Shown here piece by piece: positions 5,983 through 20,326 of a DNA stretch of 64,000 nt. Location: positions 1 through 64,000 of the IMG/VR virus record IMGVR_UViG_3300027770_001980. The stretch is one strand, 5' to 3'. The notes beneath the pieces were generated by a model. The model saw only the letters and a list, made by a program, of their open reading frames with translations, made no database searches and was not told the DNA's origin. Position numbers and translations under genes: made by a program. Each line of letters starts with the position of its first letter. Positions within the stretch are counted from its first letter, which is position 1.

Positions 5983-6040
5983 AGGATAGCAACAGCAAAC
6001 TCAAAAATTTCAATGTTTATGAAACCAAAATGCTATCCTG
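5983..6040 (+). ncRNA. CAGCAA-handle RNA E1
   Basis: AGGATAGCA/TGCTATCCT helix, ACAGCAAA, hairpin TTTCA-atGTTta-TGAAA. Confidence 0.7.
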
Positions 6041-6049
6041 TTTTATTAT

Positions 6050-6124
6050 ACTCCGGTCGTCTAGTGGCTAGGACGCCAGCCTTTCAAGTTGGAGAAGCGG
6101 GATCGAAACCCGTTCGGAGTACCA
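6050..6124 (+). tRNA. tRNA-Glu(TTC)
   Basis: CCAGC-ctTTCaa-GTTGG; variant T-loop ATCGAAA. Confidence 0.88.
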
Positions 6125-6132
6125 AGTTTTAT

Positions 6133-6210
6133 CTGTGTGTGAGAAAGTCTGGTTAATCTACTCGCCTTGGAAGTGAGAAATCGTAGGTTCAAATCCTACC
6201 ACACAGACCA
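6133..6210 (+). tRNA. tRNA-Pro(TGG)
   Basis: CTCGC-ctTGGaa-GTGAG, CCA. Confidence 0.88.
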
Positions 6211-6215
6211 TATAT

Positions 6216-6290
6216 GCCGTTGTAGTCCTCTGGGAGGGCACTGGATTGTCTATCCAATTAAGGCGGGTTCGATTCCCGTCGACGGCGCCA
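6216..6290 (+). tRNA. tRNA-Asp(GTC), copy 2
   Basis: TGGA-ttGTCta-TCCA, CCA. Confidence 0.88.
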
Positions 6291-6297
6291 AGTTTAT

Positions 6298-6373
6298 GTC
6301 CCATTCATCTAGAGGCCTAGGATAGTACCCTTTCACGGTATTCACAGCGGTTCGAATCCGCTATGGGACGCCA
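6298..6373 (+). tRNA. tRNA-Glu(TTC), copy 2
   Basis: GTACC-ctTTCac-GGTAT, CCA. Confidence 0.9.
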
Positions 6374-6380
6374 AGTTTAT

Positions 6381-6451
6381 GCGCTGGATTGACATTGCGA
6401 GTTGGATTTGAAGCCAAACGCAGACAGGTTTGATTCCTGTCAGGTGCACCA
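6381..6451 (+). pseudogene. degenerate tRNA-like gene, anticodon unclear
   Basis: ACCA end, T-arm CAGG-TTTGATT-CCTG, 8-nt loop ATTTGAAG, poor D-arm. Confidence 0.55.
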
Positions 6452-6458
6452 AGTTTAT

Positions 6459-6535
6459 GCGTGGTTAGCTCAGTTTGGTAGAGCATCGGGTTGCCAACTC
6501 GAAGGTCGCAGGTTCGAACCCTGTACCCCGCACCA
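6459..6535 (+). tRNA. tRNA-Gly(GCC)
   Basis: TCGGG-ttGCCaa-CTCGA, CCA. Confidence 0.9.
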
Positions 6536-6544
6536 AAAATTTAT

Positions 6545-6622
6545 GTCTAGGTGGCGGAGTGGCCCAACGCGACAGTCTGCAAAACTGTAACACCGTCGGT
6601 TCAAATCCGACCCTAGATTCCA
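6545..6622 (+). tRNA. tRNA-Cys(GCA)
   Basis: ACAGT-ctGCAaa-ACTGT, TCCA. Confidence 0.9.
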
Positions 6623-6626
6623 ATAT

Positions 6627-6703
6627 GCGTGGTTAGTGTTTAACGGCGAGCACGGTTGGCTTCCACCCAGCAAGAAGGAGTTCGAATCTCCTACCCCGCA
6701 CCA
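6627..6703 (+). tRNA. tRNA-Gly(TCC)
   Basis: GTTGG-ctTCCac-CCAGC, CCA. Confidence 0.88.
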
Positions 6704-6707
6704 AGTT

Positions 6708-6902
6708 TTGTAAGTGTCAGCAAGAGAAAGACTCGCTAGGAAGATTCTTCGAAGGTCGACCCAGTGTAAAAGTAGATCCGGTTCGAATCCGGCTTGGCTA
6801 CGGAGCGTCTATGTCGAGTATCCCGAGTGACTTACCTCCTCCCGTCCGGACTTGCATGAATCGGGTGAATGGTTGCGATTACAGAGGTGCAACTACTTAC
6901 AA
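6708..6902 (+). ncRNA. large CAGCAA-handle RNA E2 (~195 nt)
   Basis: TTGTAAGTG/TACTTACAA closing helix, TCAGCAAG, internal T-arm CCGG-TTCGAAT-CCGG. Confidence 0.6.
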
Positions 6903-6906
6903 ATTC

Positions 6907-7069
6907 AATAAGTAAGAATCAAGTGGAAAGCAAGAGCCACAAAGTAAATAGTAGACTATCATGCTACCGCGGTAGTCTTTGCAGTGTATACTGCGTCGGT
7001 AAAGTGTAACAGCGGAATCGAGAAACACTGGGGTAAGAGTCCCAACGTAGCGGTAAGCAGAAATTTATT
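6907..7069 (+). ncRNA. unassigned structured RNA
   Basis: AATAAGT/ATTTATT closure; AGACTATC/GGTAGTCT, GCAGT/ACTGC and GGG-GTAAGAGT-CCC hairpins. Confidence 0.45.
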
Positions 7070-7144
7070 CCGCAGTAGCTCAGTCGGTAGAGTAGTTGAC
7101 TGTTAATCAATTGGTCCCTGGTTCGAGCCCAGGCTGTGGAGCCA
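7069..7144 (+). tRNA. tRNA-Asn(GTT)
   Basis: GTTGA-ctGTTaa-TCAAT, GCCA. Confidence 0.92.
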
Positions 7145-7150
7145 AGTTTA

Positions 7151-7211
7151 AGGATGCTAACCGCAAATTTATACTCTGAACTTTTAATTCAACCAGTAAA
7201 AATGCATCCTG
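7151..7211 (+). ncRNA. CAGCAA-handle RNA E3
   Basis: AGGATGC/GCATCCT helix, ACCGCAAA, hairpin TGAA-ctTTTaa-TTCA. Confidence 0.7.
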
Positions 7212-7222
7212 TTTTATTTTGT

Positions 7223-7298
7223 TGGGGTGTCGCCTAGTGGCCTAAGGCAACGGTCTTTGAAATCGTCATCATGAGTTCGAATCTCATCTCCCCTGCCA
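7223..7298 (+). tRNA. tRNA-Gln(TTG)
   Basis: ACGGT-ctTTGaa-ATCGT, GCCA; acceptor stem has mismatches. Confidence 0.82.
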
Positions 7299-7317
7299 AA
7301 CATATTAGGAGAATGCA

Positions 7318-7446
7318 ATGGCTCACAAGCAACAAGGTATTCTAACAAAGAGTCCCCAATGGTGGAAGCACCTCAAGGACTGGAAACGTGTGTTCTGGAA
7401 ATCAGAACGCCAAGCACAGAAACGTAACATTAAACAAGGAGAATGA
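7318..7446 (+). CDS. small Trp/Lys-rich protein (42 aa)
   Basis: AGGAG RBS; MAHKQQGILTKSPQWWKHLKDWKRVFWKSERQAQKRNIKQGE*. Confidence 0.6.
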   Translation: MAHKQQGILTKSPQWWKHLKDWKRVFWKSERQAQKRNIKQGE

Positions 7447-7537
7447 CATGAAACGTTCAGGTAAACGATAGTGTCAATCTTAGATCCCGTATATGGTCTA
7501 GGGTTGGCACATTAAAGACAATTTAATATGCAATCAA

Positions 7538-7611
7538 CCCTCACAAACATTAAGGTGATGTAACCGGCTCTTAACCGGTAAAACACGGATCGTTACCGTG
7601 GTGTGGGACCA
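7538..7611 (+). tRNA. tRNA-Lys(CTT)
   Basis: ACCGG-ctCTTaa-CCGGT; variant T-loop ATCGTTA. Confidence 0.8.
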
Positions 7612-7617
7612 ATATAT

Positions 7618-7691
7618 GGGATCGTAACTTAAAAGTAAAGTATCGGACTTTTAATCCGACTAAGAAGGGGCAGTACCTTCCGGTCTCACCA
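7618..7691 (+). tRNA. tRNA-Lys(TTT)
   Basis: TCGGA-ctTTTaa-TCCGA; variant T-loop GGCAGTA. Confidence 0.82.
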
Positions 7692-7770
7692 TATAAAAAC
7701 ACATTGTCCTAGGCTGTGACCTAGTCCATCAGAAGTCCTTTGAGACAGAAACAATGTGTTTCTATATGGT
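7689..7770 (+). repeat. inverted-repeat-bracketed cassette B2
   Basis: CCATATAAAAACACATTGT / ACAATGTGTTCTCTATATGG; cargo hairpin CTAGG-CTGTGA-CCTAG. Confidence 0.75.
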
Positions 7771-7910
7771 AAAGAAGAAGCCGACATGGAAAGGTAGTGC
7801 AAAGGTATACAGTTGGTCTGGTTCGAAACAGAGTAAACTGATTGTATAATGAGCGTAGCACAACCCGCATCGCACGGGTAGTTAGTGGGTTCGATTCCCA
7901 TCTTTGTTAT
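7767..7910 (+). ncRNA. unassigned structured RNA with two T-loop mimics
   Basis: TCTG-GTTCGAAA-CAGA, ACCCG-catcgca-CGGGT, GTGGG-TTCGATT-CCCAT. Confidence 0.45.
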
Positions 7911-8025
7911 CATACATGAACACATTCAACGGTAAACAGGATACCTGGCAACTGGACGCAGGGGCTATCCCGAAGATGTAGGGCACTACCACCGTAAAGT
8001 CAGGAAATGAGTGTGTTCCTATATG
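7911..8025 (+). repeat. inverted-repeat-bracketed cassette B3
   Basis: CATACATGAACACATTCA / TGAGTGTGTTCCTATATG; inner ACGGT/ACCGT helix. Confidence 0.7.
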
Positions 8026-8100
8026 GTGTCTTTAGTGTAGTGGCCTGCACCCTGCTCTGTGAAAGCGGTAGTACCGGATCGATACCGGTAAGGCACCCCA
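8025..8100 (+). tRNA. tRNA-His(GTG)
   Basis: G-1 and C73, CTGCT-ctGTGaa-AGCGG. Confidence 0.88.
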
Positions 8101-8143
8101 ATATTTATTGTAGAGCATAAATACATTTATAAGGTGCTCTGCA

Positions 8144-8527
8144 ATGTTAAACTCAATATGTAAAAATTGTTCAAAAGAATTTATTAAAGGTCGAAATACA
8201 ACAGGGACATACTGTTCACTACCTTGCACTTTTGAATCTCAAAAAAAAGAAAGAAGAGAAAATTTCTTAGAAGGAAAAATGGTTAACCGTGGATTAATGA
8301 AACAACATATGGTTGATATTCACAGTTGGCAATGTATGTGTTGTAAAAACACTGAATGGTTAGGAGTGCCAATTCCGTTGGAGTTGGATCACATTGATGG
8401 TAATGCAGGAGACAATCGACCTGAAAATTTGCGATTGCTATGTCCAAACTGCCATGCACAGACTCCAACACATAAAGCAAAGAATAAAGGCAATGGCCGC
8501 GGGAGTCGCGGATTGCCCTGGTATTAA
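8144..8527 (+). CDS. HNH endonuclease
   Basis: LELDHIDGNAGDNRPENLRLLCPNCHAQT with Cys pairs. Confidence 0.85.
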   Translation: MLNSICKNCSKEFIKGRNTTGTYCSLPCTFESQKKERRENFLEGKMVNRGLMKQHMVDIHSWQCMCCKNTEWLGVPIPLELDHIDGNAGDNRPENLRLLCPNCHAQTPTHKAKNKGNGRGSRGLPWY

Positions 8528-8529
8528 TT

Positions 8530-8603
8530 CCTCTTGTAGTTAAATGGTATAACGGCCTCTTGATAAGTGGTTATTACAAGTTCGATTCTTGTCGAGAGGA
8601 CCA
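8530..8603 (+). tRNA. tRNA-Ile(GAT)
   Basis: ttGATaa loop, ACCA. Confidence 0.85.
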
Positions 8604-8610
8604 AGTTTAC

Positions 8611-8685
8611 GCCTGGTTAGTTCAGCGGAAGAACGTCTGCCCGATTAGCGGAATGTTGTAGGTTCGACTCCTACACCGGGTACCA
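8611..8685 (+). tRNA. tRNA-Ile(GAT)-like with variant loop
   Basis: TCTGC-ccGATta-GCGGA (C33, U37); otherwise a normal cloverleaf. Confidence 0.7.
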
Positions 8686-8692
8686 AATCAAT

Positions 8693-8767
8693 GCGCCCGT
8701 AGTATAATGGATAATACACTAGGCTACGAACTTAGGAATGGTGGTTCGATTCCATCCGGGCGCACCA
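8693..8767 (+). tRNA. tRNA-Arg(ACG)
   Basis: CTAGG-ctACGaa-CTTAG. Confidence 0.9.
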
Positions 8768-8775
8768 ATAGTTAA

Positions 8776-8865
8776 GGAAGCGTGGCAGAGCCCGGCTTAT
8801 TGCAGCAGTCTTGAAAACTGCCGACCCGAAAGGGTCCGTGAGTTCGAATCTCACCGCTTCCGCCA
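8776..8865 (+). tRNA. tRNA-Ser(TGA)
   Basis: GCAGT-ctTGAaa-ACTGC, long variable arm. Confidence 0.92.
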
Positions 8866-8882
8866 ATACAATAAATAAGTCT

Positions 8883-9626
8883 ATGCGAATACATGAACTT
8901 ATTGTAGAAACTACTGAGGAAGATCGTGCTATCATTAGCCTTGCTGATGTTATCTATAAGGATCTACAGCAATATGCTGATACAGAATTAGACTACGATG
9001 AAACAGGTGTGATGCACATTGGACGCATCGGTGATCTGTTTGATACTCCGATTCCCGGACTTGATCGCGTGAGATTAGAAATATCTTCAGATGAGTCCAT
9101 AGTGGATCTGGCACGTAGACTTCACGGTAAGGCTACACCGTCAGATAGTCATTTTGGACAATGGGATCCTATGGAGAAGGCGATATCTTTAAATGCTGAT
9201 TACTTGAGCTCTAATCGTATGCGTAGTGTCATAGCACATGAATTAAGACATGCCATGGACGATATGAAATCGTTGAATAGGGCTAACCAAAGTACACGAT
9301 ATCGTACAGCAAGGAAGCCCGAGCATCAAGCAGATAAAGATGGTGCTTATCAAGCACAACCTGCAGAAATCAATGCTAGGTTTATCGAAGCGTTGAATGT
9401 GTTAGTGCCCGTCATACCAAAGTTGGCAAATTTAGAACCTGCTGCATTTAGAACAAAGATGACAGCATATATAAACAAAGCATTTGAACTTAAAGACATC
9501 GCAGATTATTATCCAGAAAAGACAGCAAGTCCACACTATAAGAGATTGCTGCAACGAGCATGGGCTTTTATTGAAAAAGAGCTGGCTCACATACGATCAC
9601 AAACAGTTGACACAGCGGCGGAATAA
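8883..9626 (+). CDS. putative Zn metallopeptidase-like protein
   Basis: HExxH (AHELRH) plus downstream EINA; start moved to MRIHEL because the track start lies inside the tRNA. Confidence 0.55.
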   Translation: MRIHELIVETTEEDRAIISLADVIYKDLQQYADTELDYDETGVMHIGRIGDLFDTPIPGLDRVRLEISSDESIVDLARRLHGKATPSDSHFGQWDPMEKAISLNADYLSSNRMRSVIAHELRHAMDDMKSLNRANQSTRYRTARKPEHQADKDGAYQAQPAEINARFIEALNVLVPVIPKLANLEPAAFRTKMTAYINKAFELKDIADYYPEKTASPHYKRLLQRAWAFIEKELAHIRSQTVDTAAE

Positions 9627-9635
9627 GTATATAAT
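9607..9635 (+). promoter_or_regulatory. sigma70 promoter (internal to array)
   Basis: TTGACA-17-TATAAT. Confidence 0.8.
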
Positions 9636-9641
9636 ATACTT

Positions 9642-9750
9642 GCGACCGTGAGTGGAACATGGCAGACCTCCGGACCGGGGATTCTCGGCGAGGGATGGGG
9701 CGAAGTCTTAGACACAGCCTTTGTAGGTTCAAACCCTACCGGTCGTACCA
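9642..9750 (+). ncRNA. Leu-type tRNA-like RNA with expanded central domain (109 nt)
   Basis: GCGACCG/CGGTCGT acceptor + ACCA, Leu-like D-loop, T-arm; no canonical anticodon arm. Confidence 0.6.
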
Positions 9751-9762
9751 GTTAAGAATTAA

Positions 9763-9851
9763 GGAATGGTCCCATAATGGTATTGGAGCAGATTGCTAAT
9801 CTGTCGGTCGTTTAATACGGCTTCCGAGTTCGAGTCTCGGTCATTCCGCCA
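9763..9851 (+). tRNA. tRNA-Ser(GCT)
   Basis: GCAGA-ttGCTaa-TCTGT, long variable arm. Confidence 0.9.
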
Positions 9852-9872
9852 AGTTGATAAAAGAAGAATTAT

Positions 9873-10670
9873 ATGATTTTAGATTGTGTTACATTTTTTA
9901 ATGAGTTAGAATTATTAGAGGGTAGATTAGAATACCTGTATGATACCGTAGACTATTTTATCATAGTTGAAAGTGATACAACTCATAGTGGTCACCCTAA
10001 ACCTTTAAACTATTTGCCTAACATACAGAGATATAAAAAATATCTGGACAAGATAATTTATTTTCCGTATCCGGCAGAAATTAAAGATCTAAATATCGAT
10101 CAAACTCTTGATAAATTTGATTACGATTCCGCACATTGGAAAATAGAGAAAAGACAAAGAAGTCATATTCTTAATGCGATAAAATTTTTCAAGGATGACG
10201 ATATAGTATTGATCAGTGATGTTGATGAGATTCCTTCTAAATCTGCTATCGAGATAGCATCCGAGCAGTTAGGAAAATCAGCAGCAGCATTTTCATTATC
10301 ACAGGATTTTTTCTTTTATAATTTTGCTCAGAGGCAAAGTTTTCCGTGGAAAGGTACTGTTGTTTCTACAAACAAATTTGTTCAACAACAAGGTCCGCAG
10401 TGGCTTCGTGATATGCGTTGGGATATTCCAACAATATTTCAAGGTGGATATCATTTGAGCTACTGGGGTGATCCAGAACGTATCGCAACTAAGATACAGA
10501 ACTTTGCACATCAGGAACTCAACAAAGAAACCTTTACAGATACCGAACGTATAAAAGAAAGAATTAAATCAGGTAACGATCCGTTTGATCGTCAACCATT
10601 GATTCCTGTAGAACCGGAATCAATTCCAAAAGACATTTATGACATATTCAACAAATATGGCAGTAGTTAA
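9873..10670 (+). CDS. GT17-family (GnT-III-like) glycosyltransferase
   Basis: FFNELELLEGRL, VESDTTHSG, SDVDEIP, GYHLSY, KIQNFAHQE. Confidence 0.8.
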   Translation: MILDCVTFFNELELLEGRLEYLYDTVDYFIIVESDTTHSGHPKPLNYLPNIQRYKKYLDKIIYFPYPAEIKDLNIDQTLDKFDYDSAHWKIEKRQRSHILNAIKFFKDDDIVLISDVDEIPSKSAIEIASEQLGKSAAAFSLSQDFFFYNFAQRQSFPWKGTVVSTNKFVQQQGPQWLRDMRWDIPTIFQGGYHLSYWGDPERIATKIQNFAHQELNKETFTDTERIKERIKSGNDPFDRQPLIPVEPESIPKDIYDIFNKYGSS

Positions 10671-10674
10671 TTTG

Positions 10675-10763
10675 TATCTCTGGTGTAATGGTATTGGAGC
10701 GGATTGCTAATCCGTCGAGTTGCGAAAGCAGCTTTCTGAGTTCGAGTCTCAGTCATTCCGCCA
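10675..10763 (+). pseudogene. chimeric tRNA-Ser(GCT) with foreign 5' end
   Basis: D-loop to CCA resembles the 9763 Ser; 5' TATCTCT cannot pair with 3' TCATTCC. Confidence 0.7.
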
Positions 10764-10770
10764 AATAAAT

Positions 10771-10847
10771 GAGTCAGTAGTTCCAATTGGCAGAACGTTG
10801 GTCTCCAAAACCAAATGTTGTAGGTTCAAATCCTACCTGGCTCGCCA
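10771..10847 (+). tRNA. tRNA-Trp(CCA)
   Basis: TTGGT-ctCCAaa-ACCAA. Confidence 0.92.
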
Positions 10848-10871
10848 AACAAAGATAGTAAATAATAGTAT

Positions 10872-10945
10872 GCGGGTATGATGTAAAGGTAACCTGAAAC
10901 CTTGCCAAGGTTTATTTGAGAGTTCGATTCTCTCTACCCGCTCCA
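10872..10945 (+). tRNA. tRNA-Gly(GCC), copy 2
   Basis: AAACC-ttGCCaa-GGTTT. Confidence 0.9.
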
Positions 10946-10949
10946 AATA

Positions 10950-11045
10950 GGCCGGACCTGTATCCATATTCCGGCTCCGCTGACGCGAAAACAGGATGGG
11001 CTGCGCTCACGGGGTTTGATTGTTTCCCGACACAACAATAACAAT
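10950..11045 (+). ncRNA. unassigned pseudoknot-forming RNA
   Basis: GCCGGA/TCCGGC stem whose loop CCTGT can pair with ACAGG (10991-95). Confidence 0.4.
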
Positions 11046-11059
11046 CACCAAACATATGG

Positions 11060-11104
11060 CCTCACCCTCTAGCAACATAGTTCTACGGTGAGGTTTTCTT
11101 TTTT
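11060..11104 (+). terminator. terminator-like hairpin inside array
   Basis: CCTCACC/GGTGAGG with a long loop, followed by a T-rich tract. Confidence 0.45.
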
Positions 11105-11165
11105 AGGATAGCAACAGCAAACATTTAAAAACTTTTCTTGAACAAAAGCCAAAAATGCTATCCTG
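11105..11165 (+). ncRNA. CAGCAA-handle RNA E4
   Basis: AGGATAGCA/TGCTATCCT helix, ACAGCAAA, hairpin CTTTT-ctTGAac-AAAAG. Confidence 0.7.
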
Positions 11166-11174
11166 TTTTATTAT

Positions 11175-11250
11175 GCCATAGTAGCTCCAATGGTAGAGCA
11201 GCGGACTGAAAATTCGTGTGTTGCTGGTTCGAATCCAGCCTATGGTACCA
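11175..11250 (+). tRNA. tRNA-Phe(GAA)
   Basis: GCGGA-ctGAAaa-TTCGT. Confidence 0.92.
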
Positions 11251-11258
11251 ATTTATAA

Positions 11259-11266
11259 TATAAATA
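11259..11266 (+). promoter_or_regulatory. T4-like late promoter TATAAATA
   Basis: Exact octamer just upstream of the ATG; it also occurs at 13684, 49547, 52268 (+) and 27083, 44861, 51988 (-). Confidence 0.6.
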
Positions 11267-11271
11267 TTTTT

Positions 11272-11991
11272 ATGAAAATTGCAATATTACTATCCGGACA
11301 ACCAAGATTTACTCAAGAGTTTCAATTATTTTTAGATAATTTAGTAGGTTATGATCAAGCAGATTGGTTTGTTTACATGACCAATAATAATCACGATCCT
11401 TTTAAAGATAATCGCATTAAAATTCCAGAGACCTGGATAAATTATGAAATAGATTGGGCCAGAGAGACTATAACAAGAAATCTTCCTCCTAACAATTTTC
11501 TCAGACGTTTCGAAATATCGAATGTACACGAACAAATTTTTCCAACTCTTCGAGAAGAACATCTATCTGGTAATCAAGCTATTTTCAAAATGCACTATAA
11601 TATATTTAAAACAAATCAATTAAGAGAAGAATATGAAACCTCTTATAATTTTAAATACGATGCAATTGTTAGAGCCCGCCCCGATGTTGGACTTAATCAG
11701 ATAATAGATCTTCGAAAATTTGATTTGTCGACCAGGGGAGTCTTTATGCCTTGCCCTTTTTATGGACACCCAGGGAGAGAGTCTAATGATTTGATTGGAT
11801 TTGGTAATTCGGAGGTCATGTCTATTTACAGTAATGCCTTACATCATTTCAAAGAATATAGTGATGCTGGAGAAATAGTTTGCCCTGAAACACTATTATC
11901 ACGGCACTTGATTACAAATAATGTATCACGTATAAAATCTGATTTTAGTCACATTTTTCGAACTCTGCCTTTAGATCCTAAATGGTTTTGA
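11272..11991 (+). CDS. glycosyltransferase-like protein, paralog 1
   Basis: MKIAILLSGQPRF...KYDAIVRARPD...NDLIGFG; start reassigned out of tRNA-Phe. Confidence 0.6.
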   Translation: MKIAILLSGQPRFTQEFQLFLDNLVGYDQADWFVYMTNNNHDPFKDNRIKIPETWINYEIDWARETITRNLPPNNFLRRFEISNVHEQIFPTLREEHLSGNQAIFKMHYNIFKTNQLREEYETSYNFKYDAIVRARPDVGLNQIIDLRKFDLSTRGVFMPCPFYGHPGRESNDLIGFGNSEVMSIYSNALHHFKEYSDAGEIVCPETLLSRHLITNNVSRIKSDFSHIFRTLPLDPKWF

Positions 11992-12010
11992 GTGTCTGAA
12001 CTAATTACAT

Positions 12011-12097
12011 GGAAGATAGAAGTGCCGGGCACTAAGCAACTTGGAAAGTTGTTCCACTCTGAAAGGGGTGACAGTTCGACTCTGTTATCTTCCTCCA
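12011..12097 (+). tRNA. tRNA-Ser(GGA)
   Basis: GCAAC-ttGGAaa-GTTGT, long variable arm, atypical D-arm. Confidence 0.8.
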
Positions 12098-12117
12098 ACA
12101 CACTAAAGGAGCATAAC

Positions 12118-12180
12118 ATGTTAGTAATAGGATTATTAGTAATCATGGGTATGCTCTATTTGATTATTAGAAAGTTATAA
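12118..12180 (+). CDS. 20-aa hydrophobic peptide
   Basis: AAGGAG RBS; MLVIGLLVIMGMLYLIIRKL*. Confidence 0.5.
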   Translation: MLVIGLLVIMGMLYLIIRKL

Positions 12181-12181
12181 T

Positions 12182-12257
12182 GGTAGAGTAGCATAGCGGC
12201 TAATGCACCAGCTTCATACGCTGTCGATCGTGGGTTCGAGTCCCACCTCTACTACCA
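12182..12257 (+). tRNA. tRNA-Met(CAT)
   Basis: CAGC-ttCATac-GCTG. Confidence 0.85.
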
Positions 12258-12262
12258 ATCAA

Positions 12263-14429: not shown

Positions 14430-14488
14430 TGGTAAAACGGCGGATTTCTACTCCCTAAATAGCAGTTCGATTCTGTTACGCCGGACCA
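14415..14488 (+). pseudogene. chimeric tRNA: foreign 5' half + 3' half of Arg(TCT)
   Basis: 3' TCTAC-TCCCT...ACGCCGG-ACCA complements 13648-13680, not the adjacent ACCCCTAT...GGCGGATT. Confidence 0.75.
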
Positions 14489-14499
14489 AAGATTTTATT

Positions 14500-14589
14500 G
14501 CGAGCGAGACTTGGAGTCCGAGGGGTCTTATATGCCCTTTCCGCCAGATTAGCGGCTTTGAGAGAGTTCGATTCTCTCCGCTCGTACCA
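14500..14589 (+). tRNA. tRNA-Ile(TAT)-like with long variable arm
   Basis: GGGT-ctTATat-GCCC, short D-arm, extra CCGC-cagatta-GCGG hairpin. Confidence 0.65.
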
Positions 14590-14638
14590 CCTATCACAAT
14601 TAGGTTCTTTTGTTAAAATATCATATAATTAATATATT

Positions 14639-15340
14639 ATGAACAATGAAAAACATCAACCTATTACAGTGGTAGTGCCTACCATGTGGAGACATTCTCC
14701 ATTTTTAGATTTTGCACAGGACTTCTTAGAATTAAATGTAGTCGAACATTTAATCATCATCGACAATGATATCTCAAGAAGACCCAACCATCCGGTATTG
14801 ACCAATTCCAAAATAACTATTTTTGAATTTGGAAAAAATATATTTGTCAATCCTGCTTGGAACTTAGGAGTCAACAACAGCAAAACTAATATTGTTTGCA
14901 TATTGAATGATGATTTAAATTTTGATATCAGATTATTCAATAGAGTATCTAAGTTTATTAAACCTGATATGGGTGCAATAGGATTGAGTAACGGAATAGC
15001 AGAATTTGGACAAACAATTTTAACTGACGGAATGATCAATTTTGAACCATTTCATGGACAGATATGTGAAGGATTTGGTAATCTCATGTTTGTACATAAA
15101 TCTACATGGAAAGATATACCCGAAGGGTTGAATATCGCATATGGAGATAATTTCATTTTCGAACAAAATCTTTACAACAATCGAACAAACTATTTTATTG
15201 TTAATATGTTTCATCACCATGCAGCATCTACCACAGTTAAAGAAGTATTAAAAGATAAAGATGTGAAAGATGTTTTTTGGCTACGAGAAAGTCTTCTATA
15301 TAAAGACATCAAGGTCAAATTAATGAATAGAACATTTTAG
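14639..15340 (+). CDS. GT2-like glycosyltransferase
   Basis: VVVPTMW, IIDND, VNPAWNLG, LNDD, YGDNFI. Confidence 0.7.
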   Translation: MNNEKHQPITVVVPTMWRHSPFLDFAQDFLELNVVEHLIIIDNDISRRPNHPVLTNSKITIFEFGKNIFVNPAWNLGVNNSKTNIVCILNDDLNFDIRLFNRVSKFIKPDMGAIGLSNGIAEFGQTILTDGMINFEPFHGQICEGFGNLMFVHKSTWKDIPEGLNIAYGDNFIFEQNLYNNRTNYFIVNMFHHHAASTTVKEVLKDKDVKDVFWLRESLLYKDIKVKLMNRTF

Positions 15341-15350
15341 AAAGAATAGT

Positions 15351-15425
15351 GGGCTTTTAGCTTAATGGTAAAGCAGTCGACTCATAATCGATTGAGTGTA
15401 GGTTCAATTCCTACAAAGCCCACCA
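15351..15425 (+). tRNA. tRNA CAT (Ile2/lysidine-type or Met)
   Basis: GTCGA-ctCATaa-TCGAT; GGGC acceptor resembles Ile2. Confidence 0.82.
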
Positions 15426-15466
15426 TATCTCAAAGTTAGAGATAAATACTCTAACCGGAGCACGTA

Positions 15467-15895
15467 ATGTTAAAAGAATATACATGTAAAGATTGTGGTA
15501 AAGAAGGAAAAGAAAATTTTTATCAATATCGATATCAATGCAAATCTTGTTGGAATAAACGCACATATCAATCAAGTAGAGATAAATTAGATTTACTCAT
15601 ACACGAAAGAGGCGGAAAATGCGAAAGATGTGGATACAATAAATGCATGGATGCTTTACAGTGGCATCATATAGATCCTACAATTAAAGAGTTTGGAATA
15701 AGCAAACAACGAGGTGCATCGATAGAAGTATTACGAAAAGAAATTGATAAGTGTTCTTTATTATGTGCAAACTGTCATGTCGAGGTACATGCAGAAATGC
15801 GAAATAAAGGATATAAAGTTGTCAGAATTACCCATCCAGAATTTAAAGAAAGATATTTTTCTGGTAAGGGATTTTTAGATTTAATGCGGGTGTGA
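15467..15895 (+). CDS. HNH endonuclease
   Basis: CERCGYNKCMDALQWHHIDP...LLCANCHVEVH. Confidence 0.85.
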   Translation: MLKEYTCKDCGKEGKENFYQYRYQCKSCWNKRTYQSSRDKLDLLIHERGGKCERCGYNKCMDALQWHHIDPTIKEFGISKQRGASIEVLRKEIDKCSLLCANCHVEVHAEMRNKGYKVVRITHPEFKERYFSGKGFLDLMRV

Positions 15896-15972
15896 TGAAA
15901 TTGGTAGACTTCCGGTCCTTAGAAGTCCGGGTTCGAAAGAGCGTGCTGGTTCGAGTCCAGTCACCCGCACCA
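15886..15972 (+). tRNA. tRNA-Leu(TAG)
   Basis: ctTAGaa loop, long variable arm. Confidence 0.85.
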
Positions 15973-15979
15973 TTATAGG

Positions 15980-16008
15980 TTGACAACTTACCTACATAGT
16001 TGTATAAT
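15980..16008 (+). promoter_or_regulatory. sigma70 promoter
   Basis: TTGACA-17-TATAAT. Confidence 0.8.
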
Positions 16009-16029
16009 TAATTTTAATAAAAGGAAAGT

Positions 16030-16206
16030 ATGAAAACAACTGCAACATTTCGATTGAATAAGCGTTTCAAAACACTTATCTCTGCTATGCCATTTAAGAG
16101 CCAAGAACAACGTGACCATTTTCGTCACATGATGATCGAGGCACAGGTAGCAGCAAATACCATTGTCAAGAGTTCTAAGGACCGTAACAACAACCGAGGT
16201 GAATAA
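16030..16206 (+). CDS. hypothetical protein (58 aa)
   Basis: AAGGA RBS; MKTTATFRLNKRFK...RGE*; coupled to rpoZ. Confidence 0.65.
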   Translation: MKTTATFRLNKRFKTLISAMPFKSQEQRDHFRHMMIEAQVAANTIVKSSKDRNNNRGE

Positions 16207-16430
16207 TGAAAACTCCAGATTTTGTTAACAGTCTTGACACCGACAAGTGTGTGTCTAACATTGGTAGCCGATTTGATTTAGTTATTGTTGCTGCTATTCG
16301 TGCCCGCGAGTTGAATCGTGGTCATAGAAAAATGGTCAATAGTCCAAATGGTAATATTGTTAGTGCTCTGCAAGAAATCGAAGCAGGACACATTGGGCGT
16401 GATTACTTGCGAAAGGTTCGTCGACCATGA
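16206..16430 (+). CDS. rpoZ: RNA polymerase omega subunit homolog
   Basis: SRFDLVIVAAIRAREL...IVSALQEIEAGHI matches the RpoZ family core. Confidence 0.8.
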   Translation: MKTPDFVNSLDTDKCVSNIGSRFDLVIVAAIRARELNRGHRKMVNSPNGNIVSALQEIEAGHIGRDYLRKVRRP

Positions 16431-16603
16431 GCAAAGGTTCCAGACAGCGTCCAACAGATCTAAATAAGTTTCGATCAAACTACGATGCTATCTTCCGAAA
16501 GCCTTCTCCAAAAGAAGTAGATGATGCTCAAGCAGAAGATGAAGCATTCAAGAGAGTTGAAGAACAGCAATCACAAGTTCGAGACAGTGACCAAGGCGGC
16601 TAA
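16427..16603 (+). CDS. hypothetical protein (58 aa)
   Basis: MSKGSRQRPTDLNKFRSNYDAIFRK...GG*; ATGA overlap. Confidence 0.6.
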   Translation: MSKGSRQRPTDLNKFRSNYDAIFRKPSPKEVDDAQAEDEAFKRVEEQQSQVRDSDQGG

Positions 16604-16616
16604 TAAATAGAGATGC

Positions 16617-16690
16617 GCCCTACTAGTACAATGGTAGTACACTGGTTTTGTAATCCTGTGATGGCAGTTCGATTCTGTCGTAGGGCACCA
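16617..16690 (+). tRNA. tRNA-Thr(TGT), copy 2
   Basis: ttTGTaa loop; weak anticodon stem. Confidence 0.8.
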
Positions 16691-16698
16691 AGAGATAT

Positions 16699-16772
16699 GC
16701 GGGGTTCGTAAAATGGTATTACCTTAGCCTTCCAAGCTAAAGTCAGGAGTTCGATTCTCCTACCCCGCTCCA
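16699..16772 (+). tRNA. tRNA-Gly(TCC), copy 2
   Basis: TTAGC-ctTCCaa-GCTAA. Confidence 0.92.
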
Positions 16773-17041
16773 AGTCTATGCAATATGTTTAGTGCTCTAT
16801 TACGCAGCCGTTGAGTAAACTCCGACTCTGATAACACGCCTTTAGCAAGATTACACTTGCGACATGTTACTTGTAAGTTATTGAAATCAGTGGTGCCACC
16901 TTGTGATTCTGGAATGACATGATCCATATGTATTTCAGAGTCTGACAAATCGTCATCACAATAAACACAGTAGAGGCCATCGCGTTCAATAACTCTACGG
17001 CGTAGATTTAATGGTATGCGTTCTTTTTTTTGTAGCATCAA
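16760..17041 (-). CDS. HNH endonuclease
   Basis: RDGLYCVYC...MDHVIPESQGG...NLQVTCRKCNLAKG. Confidence 0.85.
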   Translation of the reverse strand: MMLQKKERIPLNLRRRVIERDGLYCVYCDDDLSDSEIHMDHVIPESQGGTTDFNNLQVTCRKCNLAKGVLSESEFTQRLRNRALNILHRLGAG

Positions 17042-17076
17042 AAATATTTAGTAAATAGAGTTTTAATGTATTAAGA

Positions 17077-17151
17077 GCCTGGTTAGCTCAGGGGGAGAGC
17101 GGCTGCTTTACACGCAGCGGGTCGGCGGTTCGAAACCGTCACCGGGTACCA
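17077..17151 (+). tRNA. tRNA-Val(TAC)
   Basis: GCTGC-ttTACac-GCAGC. Confidence 0.92.
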
Positions 17152-17159
17152 GTTTTATT

Positions 17160-17891
17160 TTAAATCCATCTTGGATCCAATGGTAAATCTCTCAGAGAAT
17201 TATCAAAATTTCCGGGTGTATAAGAAATTTTGTTTGAATTTAAATGATGTCCAAGAATAGCTTCTGGACCAAAATCCAATACTTGTTTTTCATATTCTTC
17301 AAGATGATTTATGACATCCGAATAGATTGTCATAACATCAGAGTTTCCAAATGCAAATTGATCGTTTGACTGAGAAACCTCTCCATACCATCTATTGCCA
17401 GGCATGATAACAACTTGAGAACTTAGATCATAATTGTTGATATTTAATTCAATTGGTAATCCAATATCAGTTCGTGTTCTAATTACTGCATCATATTTAA
17501 AATTATTCTCTTGTTCGTAGTTTACTCTTAACTGATTAACCTTGTATAGATTATAATACATATTGAATATATTATCGGTACCTATACCTCGATAATCTCG
17601 AACAGGAGGCCATTGTTGAAGATGAACATCGGATATTTCAAATTTTTTAAGAAAATTGTTGTTTGGTAAATTTTCAATTATTTTGGATGTAGCCCATTCA
17701 ATGTCATAATTAATCCATTTATCGTGAGGTGGAATAATATGAGAATTTTTTATTTTTAAGTCTTCTCTGGTAGGACTGTTGGTAAGATACACAAACCAAT
17801 CTGCCTGATTGTAACCTTTTAAATTATTTAGAAAATTTCTGAGGTCGCCGGTGAATCTCGGTTCTCCAGGAAGTAGTATAGCTATTCTCAT
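17160..17891 (-). CDS. glycosyltransferase-like protein, paralog 2
   Basis: MRIAILLPGEPRFTGD...KYDAVIRTRTD...NDQFAFG. Confidence 0.6.
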   Translation of the reverse strand: MRIAILLPGEPRFTGDLRNFLNNLKGYNQADWFVYLTNSPTREDLKIKNSHIIPPHDKWINYDIEWATSKIIENLPNNNFLKKFEISDVHLQQWPPVRDYRGIGTDNIFNMYYNLYKVNQLRVNYEQENNFKYDAVIRTRTDIGLPIELNINNYDLSSQVVIMPGNRWYGEVSQSNDQFAFGNSDVMTIYSDVINHLEEYEKQVLDFGPEAILGHHLNSNKISYTPGNFDNSLRDLPLDPRWI

Positions 17892-17922
17892 AAATAATAT
17901 TTATGTTAGCATATAACGATGA

Positions 17923-18159
17923 TTGATTGATTATTTATTGGCTTTTTTTGCTATCTTCTTCACTGACATCTTTTATACATATTACTTGAAGGCTGTGCAT
18001 GAAGAGCAAACACTAAAGGCCAGTTGCTGGGCAACGATAGTCTATGTGGTTGCGGCAGTGGCAATTATAGAGTATAATAGTAATCATATGTTATTGATTC
18101 CAGCGGCAGCGGGTGCATTTTGTGGCACTTGGGTTGGAATGAAAATTAGAAAGAGATAA
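17923..18159 (+). CDS. small membrane protein
   Basis: About three hydrophobic segments. Confidence 0.6.
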   Translation: MIDYLLAFFAIFFTDIFYTYYLKAVHEEQTLKASCWATIVYVVAAVAIIEYNSNHMLLIPAAAGAFCGTWVGMKIRKR

Positions 18160-18160
18160 T

Positions 18161-18239
18161 CTCCGGTTCGCCTAACCTGGTTATGGCACCTCGTTTGGGA
18201 CGAGGAATAATGTGAGTTCGAATCCCACACTGGAGACCA
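18161..18239 (+). tRNA. tRNA-Pro(TGG), copy 2
   Basis: CCTCG-ttTGGga-CGAGG. Confidence 0.88.
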
Positions 18240-18246
18240 AAGAACA

Positions 18247-18410
18247 GCGGATAAGTTACATTATCCAGTATGAGTCGCTAAGGTAGGTACCTAATCCTTA
18301 GGGCAAGTAATAGTACACAATAGCGATGTAACAGGAAGTAGTGATCTACTCACCGGGACGGGCCTCAAAACGAATCCCACCAAGTTAACTCGCCATGGCA
18401 CACGGCGTAC
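18247..18410 (+). ncRNA. unassigned structured RNA
   Basis: GGATAA/TTATCC, TAAGG/CCTTA, AGTAG/CTACT, GGGA/TCCC and CGCC/GGCG hairpins between two tRNAs. Confidence 0.45.
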
Positions 18411-18438
18411 AATAGGACAAATTGTGTGGCACGAATAT

Positions 18439-18512
18439 TGCGGGATAGAGTAACGGTAATTCAGAAGTCTCATAAGCTTCAAATCTTGGTTCGATTCCAG
18501 GTCCCGCTTCCA
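18439..18512 (+). tRNA. tRNA-Met(CAT), possibly initiator-like
   Basis: GAAGT-ctCATaa-GCTTC; 1:72 mismatch, but lacks the GGG/CCC anticodon stem. Confidence 0.8.
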
Positions 18513-18517
18513 GTTTT

Positions 18518-18624
18518 AGGATGCATCCAGCAAACACTTTTTGCCACCAAAATCAGGCAGGCCGTGCAATTGGGCACCGTAGTTGAAATAGGGGTTCGAT
18601 TCCCGGCGATACTACAGCATCCTG
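18518..18624 (+). ncRNA. CAGCAA-handle RNA E5 with tRNA-elbow mimic
   Basis: AGGATGC/GCATCCT helix, CCAGCAAA, D-arm-like GTGC-AATTGG-GCAC, T-arm GGG-TTCGATT-CCC. Confidence 0.7.
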
Positions 18625-18639
18625 TTTTCCCAAATTGTC

Positions 18640-18668
18640 TTGACAAGACGCGAGTTTTGTTATACAAT
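18640..18668 (+). promoter_or_regulatory. sigma70 promoter for E6-E7-DUF2828
   Basis: TTGACA-17-TACAAT. Confidence 0.75.
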
Positions 18669-18700
18669 ATGTACATGTTAAGAAATTAACAGTAAGTTTT

Positions 18701-18833
18701 AGGTTAGGTACAGCAACTATTCATTACTATGGACTGCTACTTATCACATTCGGACATCAAACTCCGAATTTAAGTAGATAGAGGAGTTTCGATAAGTCTC
18801 CTCGATAAAAATAAAAAGTAGACAACTAACCTG
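18701..18833 (+). ncRNA. CAGCAA-handle RNA E6
   Basis: AGGTTAG/CTAACCT helix, ACAGCAAC; CTACTTA/TAAGTAG, ATTCGGA/TCCGAAT and GAGGAG/CTCCTC arms. Confidence 0.7.
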
Positions 18834-18841
18834 TTGAATAT

Positions 18842-18896
18842 AGAATGTTAACAGCAATCTTATATTTCATTTATATCGAAAATAAAATACATTCTG
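18842..18896 (+). ncRNA. CAGCAA-handle RNA E7
   Basis: AGAATGT/ACATTCT helix, ACAGCAAT, TTTC-a-ttTATat-c-GAAA; ends about 15 nt before the DUF2828 ATG. Confidence 0.65.
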
Positions 18897-18910
18897 AAAG
18901 GTAAATTAAA

Positions 18911-20326
18911 ATGAACGCATTTGTAAACGCAATCGCAAACCAAGAAGCCCGTACTGCCAATGGCATGAAGGCTCGTAAGTCAACCGCCAACAAGTGTGTT
19001 GACCTGTTCTACAACATCGGTGCAAGCCGTGGTAAGAACATCATCCCTGCATTCACTGCGGCTTATGTTGAAAACTTTGACATGGCTCTGCGTATCGCAC
19101 AATGGGCTCGTGATGTCCGTGGTGGTGCAGGCGAACGTGAACTATTCCGTAGTGTACTTGTACACTTGGAAAAGACTGATCCAGATGCCGCTATGGCTCT
19201 GTTGAAGAAGATCCCAGAAGTGGGTCGTTGGGATGACATCTTTGTCTTTCAAACTCCTGCGTTGAAGTCTGCTGCTTACACAATGTTGGGTGACGCACTA
19301 CGTGCATCAAACGGATTGGCAGCTAAGTGGACACCACGTAAGGGCAAGATCGCAGCAGAAGTCCGTGAGTTCTTCGGAATGAGCCCAAAGTTCTACCGTA
19401 AGAGTCTTGTGGCTCTGACCAAGGTCGTTGAAACACAAATGTGTGCCAAGGACTGGGACAACATCAACTTCAGTCACGTACCAAGCGTGGCTGCTCGTAA
19501 CTACAAGAAGGCTTTCGGACGTAACACTCCAAAGTTTGCTGAGTACGTGGCTGCATTGGTTAAGGGCACACCTGGTGTGAAGGTTAACGCTAACGCGATT
19601 TTCCCACACGATGTGTTGAAGGGTCTAATTGGTTCGTACAACCGTACCAAGTTGTCTAAGACAGATCTGGATCACATCACTGCACAATGGAACGCTTTGC
19701 CAAACTACGTTGGAGATGCCAGCATCCTTCCAATCGTGGACGTAAGCGGCTCTATGAGTTGCAAGGCAGGTGGTGAAGGTACTGTTACCTGTATGGATAT
19801 TTCTGTTAGCCTTGGCTTGTACTTGGCTGATAAGAACAAGGGCGTGTTCAAGGACACATTCTTGACATTCAGTGACAAGCCTGATTTGATGACTCTTAAG
19901 GGCGACATCGTCCAAAAGTTGGATCAAATGGAAACAAGCGACTGGGGTATGAGCACAAATCTACACGCAGCATTTGAAAAGATTCTGAGTGTGGCAGTTA
20001 AGGGCAATGCTCCTCAAGAAGACATGCCAGCAATGGTACTAATCTTGAGCGACATGCAATTTAACCAATGTGTTAAGCATGACGACAGTGCCATGGAAAT
20101 GATCGAACGCAAGTTCGAAGCAGCCGGATACACTTGTCCAAAGGTTGTTTTCTGGAACCTAAACAGTTCTGGCAATGTACCAGTCAAGTCAGATAAGAGC
20201 GGTGCCGCTCTTGTAAGTGGATTTAGTCCAGCAATCATGGCCAGCTTGCTGGGTGCGGATGTGGAACAATTCACTCCAGAAGGTATCATGCGTAAGACTG
20301 TAATGGTTCCACGCTACGATCTGTAA
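18911..20326 (+). CDS. DUF2828-family Ro60/TROVE-like vWA protein
   Basis: T-NG start, VDLFYNIGASR, ARDVRGGAGER, GRWDD, AKWTPR, MIDAS DVSGSM, SDMQF, FWNL, LVSGFS; strongly biased codon usage. Confidence 0.8.
   Translation: MNAFVNAIANQEARTANGMKARKSTANKCVDLFYNIGASRGKNIIPAFTAAYVENFDMALRIAQWARDVRGGAGERELFRSVLVHLEKTDPDAAMALLKKIPEVGRWDDIFVFQTPALKSAAYTMLGDALRASNGLAAKWTPRKGKIAAEVREFFGMSPKFYRKSLVALTKVVETQMCAKDWDNINFSHVPSVAARNYKKAFGRNTPKFAEYVAALVKGTPGVKVNANAIFPHDVLKGLIGSYNRTKLSKTDLDHITAQWNALPNYVGDASILPIVDVSGSMSCKAGGEGTVTCMDISVSLGLYLADKNKGVFKDTFLTFSDKPDLMTLKGDIVQKLDQMETSDWGMSTNLHAAFEKILSVAVKGNAPQEDMPAMVLILSDMQFNQCVKHDDSAMEMIERKFEAAGYTCPKVVFWNLNSSGNVPVKSDKSGAALVSGFSPAIMASLLGADVEQFTPEGIMRKTVMVPRYDL

Follow-up and report, generated by a model that had tools for sequence, protein, structure and literature searches.

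Seven related elements in a phage tRNA array

The DNA analysed here, 64,000 nt long and called the window below, is part of the 221-kb IMG/VR viral record IMGVR_UViG_3300027770_001980. Its locus of interest holds an array of tRNA genes, a gene for a DUF2828 protein, and seven copies (E1 to E7) of an element whose two ends pair into a helix, with the motif (A)CAGCAA close behind the 5' strand (Table 1); we refer to these as helix-ACAGCAA elements. The seven had been proposed from the letters alone (the sequence-only reading), and all were confirmed in place on the + strand: a perfect Watson-Crick terminal helix of 7-9 bp is present in 7/7, and in 7/7 C(A/C)GCAA begins exactly 10 nt from the first helix base. 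Chance does not account for them, the pattern AGRWT-N5-CMGCAA having 7 matches in the window against 0.37 expected. A Megablast search of the locus against deposited phage genomes gave no match, so that the phage has no close DNA relative among them.

Table 1. Features of the locus, in window coordinates
Feature	Position	Strand	Description
tRNA array, 41 tRNA genes	5650..18512	+	All genes on +; ARAGORN, Rfam tRNA hits; E1-E4 inside, E5 directly after
E1, short, 57 nt	5983..6039	+	9-bp helix AGGATAGCA/TGCTATCCT, ACAGCAA, weak AU-rich hairpin, then GTTTT; 5 nt after tRNA-Asp
E2, long divergent, 195 nt	6708..6902	+	Helix TTGTAAGT/ACTTACAA, CAGCAA at +10, internal T-arm-like hairpin
E3, short, 60 nt	7151..7210	+	Helix AGGATGC/GCATCCT, core variant CCGCAA, extended hairpin, 7-nt loop CUUUUAA
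E4, short, 60 nt	11105..11164	+	Helix identical to that of E1; directly before tRNA-Phe
E5, mid-size, 106 nt	18518..18623	+	Helix AGGATGC/GCATCCT, CAGCAA, T-arm-like GGGGTTCGATTCCC; 5 nt after tRNA-Met
Sigma-70-like promoter	18640..18668	+	TTGACA-17-TACAAT, 11/12 consensus match; upstream of E6, E7 and the DUF2828 gene
E6, long, 132 nt	18701..18832	+	Helix AGGTTAG/CTAACCT, ACAGCAA, three internal hairpins; z -4.05
E7, short, 54 nt	18842..18895	+	Helix AGAATGT/ACATTCT, ACAGCAA; 3' strand ends 15 nt before ATG, just ahead of the Shine-Dalgarno sequence
DUF2828 + DUF7788 (vWA-like) protein gene	18911..20326	+	471 aa; Pfam, PHROG 850, AlphaFold2, Foldseek
MIDAS-type motif DVSGSM, residues 277-282	19739..19756 (codons)	+	D277, S279, S281 and M282 invariant in 21 distant homologues

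E1 to E5 fill tRNA-like slots, starting 5-9 nt past a tRNA CCA or having the next tRNA within ~10 nt, and the spacers around them are U-rich, like those that separate the tRNAs. E6 and E7 lie between promoter and DUF2828 start, as had been claimed. E1 has a z of -3.9. The most divergent element is E2, in which the base after the helix is A and not G; it is kept, with its T arm, in three related contigs (L017, L064 and L078). In the orthologues of E6 two helix pairs covary.

A strict descriptor (a 7-bp Watson-Crick helix, CMGCAA at +10 and a closing strand within 330 nt) has 8 matches on the + strand of the window and 2 on the - strand, with 1.4 expected on both strands together. The eighth + match (43863-43933), far from the cluster and probably inside coding sequence, is most likely due to chance, since 1.4 matches are expected per window; it and the two - matches are consistent with chance. 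A descriptor that allowed G-U pairs was too permissive (38 matches in the window), and the strict Watson-Crick version was used instead. A covariance model, R1, was built from short elements and scores its training members E1 and E3 at 60.4 and 61.8 bits; in the window it picks up the four short copies only, E2, E5 and E6 being missed, and therefore the long members were followed with the descriptor. The motif CAGCAA also follows three other promoters (5045, 5136 and 13277); these were rejected as elements for want of a closing helix.

The elements accompany DUF2828 genes in phages and bacteria

The sample for the phage clade consisted of 80 IMG/VR contigs encoding the protein at 79-93% identity. 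In these contigs the gene strand carries the 5' pattern 270 times and the opposite strand carries it twice, and nearly all copies close with a perfect 3' strand, with compensatory helix variants AGGATCG/CGATCCT, AGGATGA/TCATCCT, AGGTTAT/ATAACCT and others. Every unique copy has G after the helix, followed by T in 92%, neither of which was part of the search. Matches to the strict descriptor on the gene strand and the opposite strand number 250:0, 84:4 and 61:0 in three phage clades, and in four clades every locus (68/68, 24/24, 24/24 and 4/4) has an element no more than 1.5 kb from the gene. In 68/68 loci of the clade with enough flank the nearest strict element is upstream of the gene, its distance from the ATG ranging over 14-626 nt (median 16 nt); most related loci have a copy of the E7 type directly before the gene, ending 14-16 nt before the ATG. 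The compensatory helix changes first noted among E1 to E7 hold, along with their strand specificity, in the clade and beyond it.

Homologues of the protein are found in 711/50,697 deposited phage genomes. The helix + ACAGCAA design adjoins the gene in each distant phage inspected (25-48% protein identity), two of them having only candidates with a 6-bp helix. The elements lie upstream of the gene in Synechococcus phage BUCT-ZZ01 (three), Listeria phage A511 (three in tandem), a Campylobacter Fletchervirus phage (two), Bacillus phage PK-3 (five) and an Enterococcus Schiekvirus phage (three). They lie downstream in a Staphylococcus Sextaecvirus phage (three in tandem), just downstream in Mycobacterium phage Faith1 (three), and in the tRNA array just downstream of the gene in Felixounavirus Alf5 (four; L082 4716-4781, 4882-4939, 5337-5403 and 5423-5548). 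A search of both strands over the first 50 kb of Alf5 gave no matches but these four, all just after the gene. The two weaker candidates, with 6-bp helices, are a single one in a Lak megaphage (Lak-B5) and a mini-element in Vibrio phage VH7D that spans the Shine-Dalgarno sequence and ATG, the start codon lying within its 3' strand and the Shine-Dalgarno sequence in its loop.

Genome assemblies of GTDB provided an independent collection of 80 loci, some of which may be prophage or contaminating phage DNA. Here the gene strand has 141 matches and the opposite strand 5; one or more strict copies are present in 62/80 loci, and tandem sets of up to six, differing in their interiors, occur. The adjacency to DUF2828 genes that the sequence-only reading had suggested looking for across phage and bacterial genomes is thus observed both in very distant phages and in this collection.

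We also note some peculiarities of individual phages: (i) Tiny coding sequences annotated as 'hypothetical protein' overlap elements in Staphylococcus phage S-CoN_Ph1 (L151:8807-9154) and, on the opposite strand, in Alf5 (gp133, L082:5324-5647); such coding sequences that coincide with elements are probably mis-annotations. (ii) In Listeria phage A511 a stretch (L150:6507-7058) ~1 kb upstream of the DUF2828 gene and its three RNAs matches the Rfam ROOL RNA (RF03087) at 87.5 bits, E 3.5e-16, just below the gathering score of 99.1. (iii) BUCT-ZZ01 has two adjoining tRNA-like genes downstream of its DUF2828 gene (L081:4600-4790), with the same ~30-nt insert in the anticodon region.

A consensus with the marks of RNA

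With 75 lineages weighted equally, the family consensus reads 5'-A/A-R-G-N-Y-N-C, N-W-A, CAGCAA ... G-N-R-N-C-Y-U/G-U, where the slashes set off the bases before and after the helix. The G after the helix is found in 96% and the U that follows it in 59%; the A before the helix is found in 73%, and neither that A nor the G was imposed by the search. The termini in the clade of the window phage are AGG...CCUGU. In all, 65 different helix heptamers occur. Copies in one genome have the outer 4-5 helix pairs in common and differ in the inner two; this sharing fits both sequence-specific recognition that co-evolves with the protein and duplication, and decides nothing between them.

The motif was also sought through a tally that took in all perfect 7-bp inverted repeats with a span of 40-140 nt and G as the next base, and counted the hexamer at +10. 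On the gene strand CAGCAA occurs 372 times and the next hexamer 34 times, while the top hexamer of the opposite strand occurs 16 times; the variants CAGCAG and CAGCAT occur 15 and 10 times. As CAGCAA tops a tally of all such repeats, the motif emerges without being assumed.

Single mismatches in near-perfect helices are G-U in 9 cases and A-C in 3. The conserved motif is asymmetric, occurring on one arm only, and the strand bias is extreme. Judged by these comparative patterns, each of the seven elements would encode a small non-coding RNA, all of them belonging to a single modular family. We found no description of the phage and bacterial RNAs in the literature or Rfam, within the libraries searched; the family, large and located beside DUF2828 genes in phages and bacteria, is apparently undescribed.

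The Alf5 elements (L082:4705-4790, 4870-4945, 5330-5410 and 5415-5555) are flanked by a second, outer helix (GAC/GTC, TAC/GTA, GAGC/GCTC), which leaves an internal loop with AGA on the 5' side and a conserved G on the 3' side. Given this Felixounavirus outer helix, the ends of the mature RNAs may differ between clades.

A constant module and variable interiors

Members range from 37 to 324 nt (median 67). The constant module consists of the end helix of 7-9 bp, usually with A or U before it and G(U) after it, a linker of 2-3 nt, single-stranded ACAGCAA on the 5' side and an A-rich 3' side opposite. Three types of interior are observed: a weak hairpin in RNAs of ~50-65 nt, a permuted T arm / hairpin / D arm in those of ~105-135 nt, and a larger fold. 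Short members have the weak AU-rich hairpin only, which in some is a 5-bp stem with a 7-nt CU-NNN-AA loop resembling an anticodon loop.

A canonical T arm (a 5-bp stem ending in G-C, with the loop UUCRANN) is present in 51/131 members of 71-140 nt, 3/243 short members and 0/478 reverse complements. Eighteen mid-size RNAs from eight lineages could be aligned over the constant module, T arm, a 6-bp hairpin and the D arm (UAGCUCAAUGGUAGAGC). Four internal helices of this class, which were not used for selection and contain many G-U pairs, have 97.7% of cells paired, compared with 32-46% in slid controls; their covariation score is 0.89 against at most 0.17 in controls, and 0/500 shuffles reach the observed value. 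E5 can be placed loosely in the mid-size tRNA-like class, to which E2, larger and with a T arm, is related, while the short elements E1, E3, E4 and E7 lack the permuted domain. The T-arm mimics reported earlier for E2 and E5 are present, and in the mid-size subclass such an arm is part of a complete domain in the style of YrlA: bacterial YrlA Y RNAs are defined by a permuted tRNA-like domain with this order T / hairpin / D (PMC4201824). The Rfam YrlA model (RF02553) aligns end to end with a Faith1 element (L083:4533-4657), the best score being 21.7 bits.

Predicted Ro60 fold of the DUF2828 protein

Pfam detects only DUF2828, DUF7788 and a sub-threshold VWA_2 in the window protein, and a search of NCBIfam gave no match. 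The DVSGSM motif of the vWA domain, pointed out in the sequence-only reading, was confirmed. PHROG 850 is labelled 'RNA-binding protein', and actinophage members carry the SEA-PHAGES label 'Ro-like RNA binding protein'. An AlphaFold2 model made with 21 diverse homologues (predicted local distance difference test 80.6, predicted template modelling score 0.80) has a helical-repeat ring followed by a vWA domain with the MIDAS motif. In a Foldseek search of the PDB, Ro60 structures (phage phiLo, Xenopus, Deinococcus and human) take all of the first 12 places; they align along the whole length at E from 1e-7 to 3e-5, and isolated vWA domains rank after them, at E 3e-3 or weaker. The comparison with Ro60 that the earlier reading had called for thus returned a full-length match. 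Since these structural matches are full-length and sequence matches are absent, the protein is a Ro60 paralogue by predicted fold and, by sequence, not a member of TROVE.

Gene neighbours and RNA repair

Open reading frames (ORFs) around 99 loci were clustered. The commonest neighbour is the RNA ligase RtcB, on the same strand in 28/99 loci; a WYL-domain protein (25), a 303-aa protein (20) and RlaP (6) also recur. The 303-aa neighbour had no Pfam or NCBIfam match, and no homologue of RlaP, the WYL protein or the 303-aa protein was found in the window. Listeria phage A511 has RtcB 1.3 kb downstream. Clostridia assemblies (Ruminococcus, Lachnospiraceae and Oscillospiraceae) have apparent operons of the WYL protein, the 303-aa protein, 1-6 RNAs, DUF2828, RtcB and, in some, RlaP (L189, L204, L221, L223 and L225 among them), some with RtcB before the RNAs and DUF2828. 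The RtcB and RlaP neighbours bear out the link to RNA repair that had been proposed; all the computational checks put forward in the sequence-only reading gave results that favour it. RlaP has been described as extending damaged tRNA halves at their 3' ends by added nucleotides (bioRxiv 10.64898/2025.12.29.696909).

Bas63 gp130, from a Felixounavirus, is required to overcome the Ppl defence system (PhageMaP preprint, PMC11482910). Its authors call it Ro60-like, note that it is directly upstream of tRNA genes, and guessed that some of these 'tRNA genes' may be Y RNAs, which they did not identify (PMC11482910). The position of gp130 matches that of the DUF2828 gene in the related Felixounavirus Alf5, where the RNAs are located here.

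Other features of the tRNA array

HNH endonuclease genes and other small ORFs are interspersed in the array. At gathering thresholds Rfam detects only tRNAs in the window, and nothing there passes the YrlA threshold. The tRNA covariance model matches two segments not called by ARAGORN, 12264-12378 (115 nt) and 7788-7909 (122 nt); these are suggestive of tRNA genes that contain long insertions, possibly introns. The ~450 nt before the first tRNA (5190-5650) are without a convincing ORF and include a T-arm-like GGGGTTCGAATCCCC at ~5551-5567; this stretch may be a further tRNA-like non-coding RNA. Within the array, 6904-7068, 10946-11100 and 18240-18438 are non-coding, are neither tRNA nor helix-ACAGCAA element, and received no family assignment. 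Three sigma-70-like promoters (5003-5052, 5098-5141 and 13238-13282) have ACATA-N1-3-CAGCAA ~10 nt past the -10 box, which may be a common initial transcribed sequence, or chance.

Likeness to Dictyostelium Class I RNAs

When short elements were scanned alone, the best Rfam family was always RF01414, the Dictyostelium Class I RNA, matched end to end in four clades. Scores were 20.8 bits for E7, 19.6 for a Ruminococcus element, 18.9 and 14.3 for Faith1 elements and 16.0 for E1, so that none in this range of 14.3-20.8 reached the gathering threshold of 41.5 bits; the matches are weak taken alone, because they are below threshold and come from very small search spaces. The sequence-only reading, which had looked to YrlA and Y RNA, overlooked this closest relative. 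RF01414 has no known function, and so the match does not place the RNAs in a described family with another function.

Class I RNAs have a short stem joining the 5' and 3' ends, conserved in structure and variable in sequence; beside its 5' strand is an unpaired 11-nt motif, CCUUACAGCAA in D. discoideum, in which C6, C9, A10 and A11 are nearly invariant, and the termini AAG...CUGU are conserved while the remainder varies (PMC7919456). They are abundant free cytoplasmic species and were judged unique to Dictyostelia (PMC7919456). A pull-down with one Class I RNA recovered Rnp1A/CIBP, GuaB, NdkC and the uncharacterised DDB_G0281243 (bioRxiv 10.1101/2020.04.05.026054).

Amoebae also encode the protein. 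Through a representative library and an amoebozoan query we reached Tieghemostelium (Dictyostelium) lacteum KYR00564.1, of 504 aa with PF11443 and PF25043, which is 32% identical to the window protein over the full length (E 1e-68) and keeps the MIDAS motif. Its gene is a single exon with ordinary nuclear neighbours on a 1.2-Mb contig; R1 found no element in 21.5 kb around it. Further homologues occur in Cavostelium, Nematostelium, Rhizamoeba and Flabellula (Amoebozoa), a chytrid and an ichthyosporean, and a search that started from a giant-virus protein returned environmental sequences only.

The likeness to Class I RNAs could reflect common descent, or convergence on one protein family. That the phage and bacterial RNAs and Class I RNAs form one ancient family, with the DUF2828 Ro60 paralogue as partner in all hosts, is a tentative proposal to which we give slightly less than an even chance. 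It draws on the common RNA design and on the full-length T. lacteum gene with its amoebozoan homologues; convergence, or another partner protein in amoebae, would be the alternative. If true, Class I RNAs, which are abundant and needed in normal early development, would belong, as Y-RNA-like subunits, to a particle of Ro type for RNA surveillance or repair, and such a particle would be common to, or exchanged among, amoebae, bacteria and phages. On that view DDB_G0281243 may be the protein subunit of such a particle and the D. discoideum orthologue of the DUF2828 protein.

Proposed function and alternatives

On the best reading, a Ro60 paralogue has these RNAs as its Y-RNA-like partners, with a role in RNA surveillance, repair or counter-defence, and conserved adjacency and strand suggest that they and the adjacent DUF2828 protein probably form a cognate RNA-protein particle. 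E1 to E5 would be transcribed with the phage tRNAs, and E6 and E7 from the promoter of the DUF2828 gene; the RNAs would then be cut out of the precursor transcripts. The constant module would be the docking site for the protein, as Ro60 binds the 5'-proximal motif and stem of a Y RNA, with CAGCAA as the putative binding handle. The interiors may be interchangeable effector modules, which would gate the ring or tether the particle to exoribonucleases, tRNA-handling or repair enzymes. The particle would act on damaged or misfolded RNA, probably tRNA, during infection, in surveillance or repair that serves counter-defence. Where copies cover the ribosome-binding region, as E7 does, the protein might repress its own translation; such autoregulation by E6/E7 is suggested by position, namely that of the E7-type copies and the VH7D mini-element.

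Several results weigh against this particle. All support for it is computational and comparative. A strict element near the gene was not found in 18/80 GTDB loci or in 6/6 giant-virus-like loci (L143-L148), and counts of terminal-helix covariation are inflated, the elements having been picked for perfect helices. By sequence the protein matches neither Pfam TROVE nor any PDB chain, those of Ro60 included, and its structural matches to Ro60 are moderate, with template modelling scores of 0.46-0.62. Known Y RNAs have a short conserved 5'-proximal motif contacted by Ro60, GNCGAAN0-1G in bacteria and GGUCCGA in animals (PMC4201824); neither is present here, the conserved motif being (A)CAGCAA, and the best YrlA score does not reach the gathering threshold of 69 bits. 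No RtcB homologue was found in the window. Direct binding to a Class I RNA has been shown in Dictyostelium for one protein only, the RRM protein Rnp1A/CIBP (PMC7919456).

This last point fits an unlikely alternative, that the RNAs act alone or with a host protein, for instance as tRNA-mimic decoys or competitive inhibitors of tRNA-cleaving defence nucleases, the DUF2828 gene being co-regulated with them in a response to RNA damage and its protein forming no complex with them. [quoted passage not shown] However, what is invariant is the helix with ACAGCAA, the tRNA-like part being absent from most members (3 T arms in 243 short elements), and adjacency to one protein family survives down to 28-40% protein identity and through changes of gene order, which would not be expected from simple co-regulation.

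It is quite improbable, though suggested by the E7-type copies (in most of the 68 related loci these stop 14-16 nt short of the ATG, with a median of 16), that the elements are purely cis-acting, i.e. processing, stability or translational-operator signals of the DUF2828 mRNA and tRNA precursors and not stand-alone RNAs. The 5' leader location of E6 and E7 behind the promoter would suit such signals, as would the VH7D mini-element, whose 3' strand includes the start codon and whose loop holds the Shine-Dalgarno sequence. E1 to E4 are yet 7-13 kb from the gene, between tRNAs; Felixounavirus, actinophages and Staphylococcus phages have the copies downstream of the gene; tandem copies, up to six of them, differ in their interiors; and in Dictyostelium, RNAs built on this design are abundant as free species in the cytoplasm.

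Repeats acting as DNA (recombination or homing-endonuclease targets, origin or promoter/terminator elements, or small mobile inverted-repeat elements) would account for several copies of terminal inverted repeats and for the HNH endonuclease genes scattered in the array, but are very improbable given the extreme strand bias relative to the gene and tRNAs, the asymmetric ACAGCAA on one arm only, the 9 to 3 preference for G-U over A-C mismatches with G-U pairs also in internal helices, and the conserved tRNA-like domains.

Pairing of the RNAs with the Ro60 paralogue would supply an RNA partner for a protein family of 711/50,697 phage genomes, including Felixounavirus, Herelleviridae, KVP40-like, Campylobacter and cluster-L phages, one reported member of which, Bas63 gp130, is a validated counter-defence gene. 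The Ro60/Y-RNA principle would then hold for a second protein family too, one for which the motif of RNA recognition is different, and Clostridia show the same Ro-RNA-RtcB(-RlaP) grouping for repair. For Class I RNAs, whose function has been open since 2004, the pairing offers a testable hypothesis and counters their confinement to social amoebae. In phage genomes, dozens of small ORFs would be flagged as wrongly called, along with unannotated RNA genes.

Comparison with known systems

Like YrlA Y RNAs, the helix-ACAGCAA RNAs are encoded near, and co-oriented with, the gene for a ring-plus-vWA protein, often with RtcB; their ends pair into a stem, they have a short conserved 5'-proximal motif, and several different RNAs occur per genome. 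The permuted T arm / hairpin / D arm domain is a further likeness, in the mid-size class only. Unlike in YrlA, where the motif lies within the stem, the conserved ACAGCAA sits in a loop; most members are minimal, without the tRNA-like domain, and copies are scattered in phage tRNA arrays. The partner differs too, matching Pfam DUF2828/DUF7788 and not TROVE. The RNAs would thus work like a Ro60/Y-RNA system, but fail two tests that define YrlA, the binding motif and the Rfam score. The arrangement of RNAs, DUF2828 and RtcB in Clostridia parallels rsr-yrlBA-rtcBA, the RNA-repair operon of Salmonella (PMC7790460).

Thermus phage phiLo, with its Ro60 and Yrl1/Yrl2 (PMC12135203; PDB 9KOP, 9L5Y), likewise has a phage Ro60-fold protein with small RNAs directly upstream, and its Ro60 is the best structural match to our model (9l5y_A, E 1.1e-7). 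Unlike the window protein, phiLo Ro60 is a recognisable Ro60 homologue and its RNAs have a CGAA motif; identity is ~17% in the structural alignment.

With Class I RNAs the elements have in common the end-joining stem with compensatory changes. The motif CCUUACAGCAA corresponds to N-W-A-CAGCAA at its fixed offset here, where even the CCGCAA of E3 keeps C6, C9, A10 and A11, and the termini (A)AG...CUGU correspond to A/A-R-G...C-Y-U/G-U. Class I RNAs and short elements are both ~55-60 nt, AU-rich and multicopy, with a variable remainder. In contrast to Class I RNAs, the elements are at phage and bacterial loci with sigma-70-like promoters or a tRNA-operon context and no DUSE promoter ~60 nt upstream, many are much longer with tRNA-like domains, and they have a genomic coupling to DUF2828 and RtcB unlike anything in Class I as reported. 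By sequence and predicted pairing, they agree with the structural definition of Class I and not with its Rfam score, taxonomic or promoter features. Taken together, the phage, bacterial and amoebal design points to an ancient particle of Ro/Y-RNA type linked to RNA repair.

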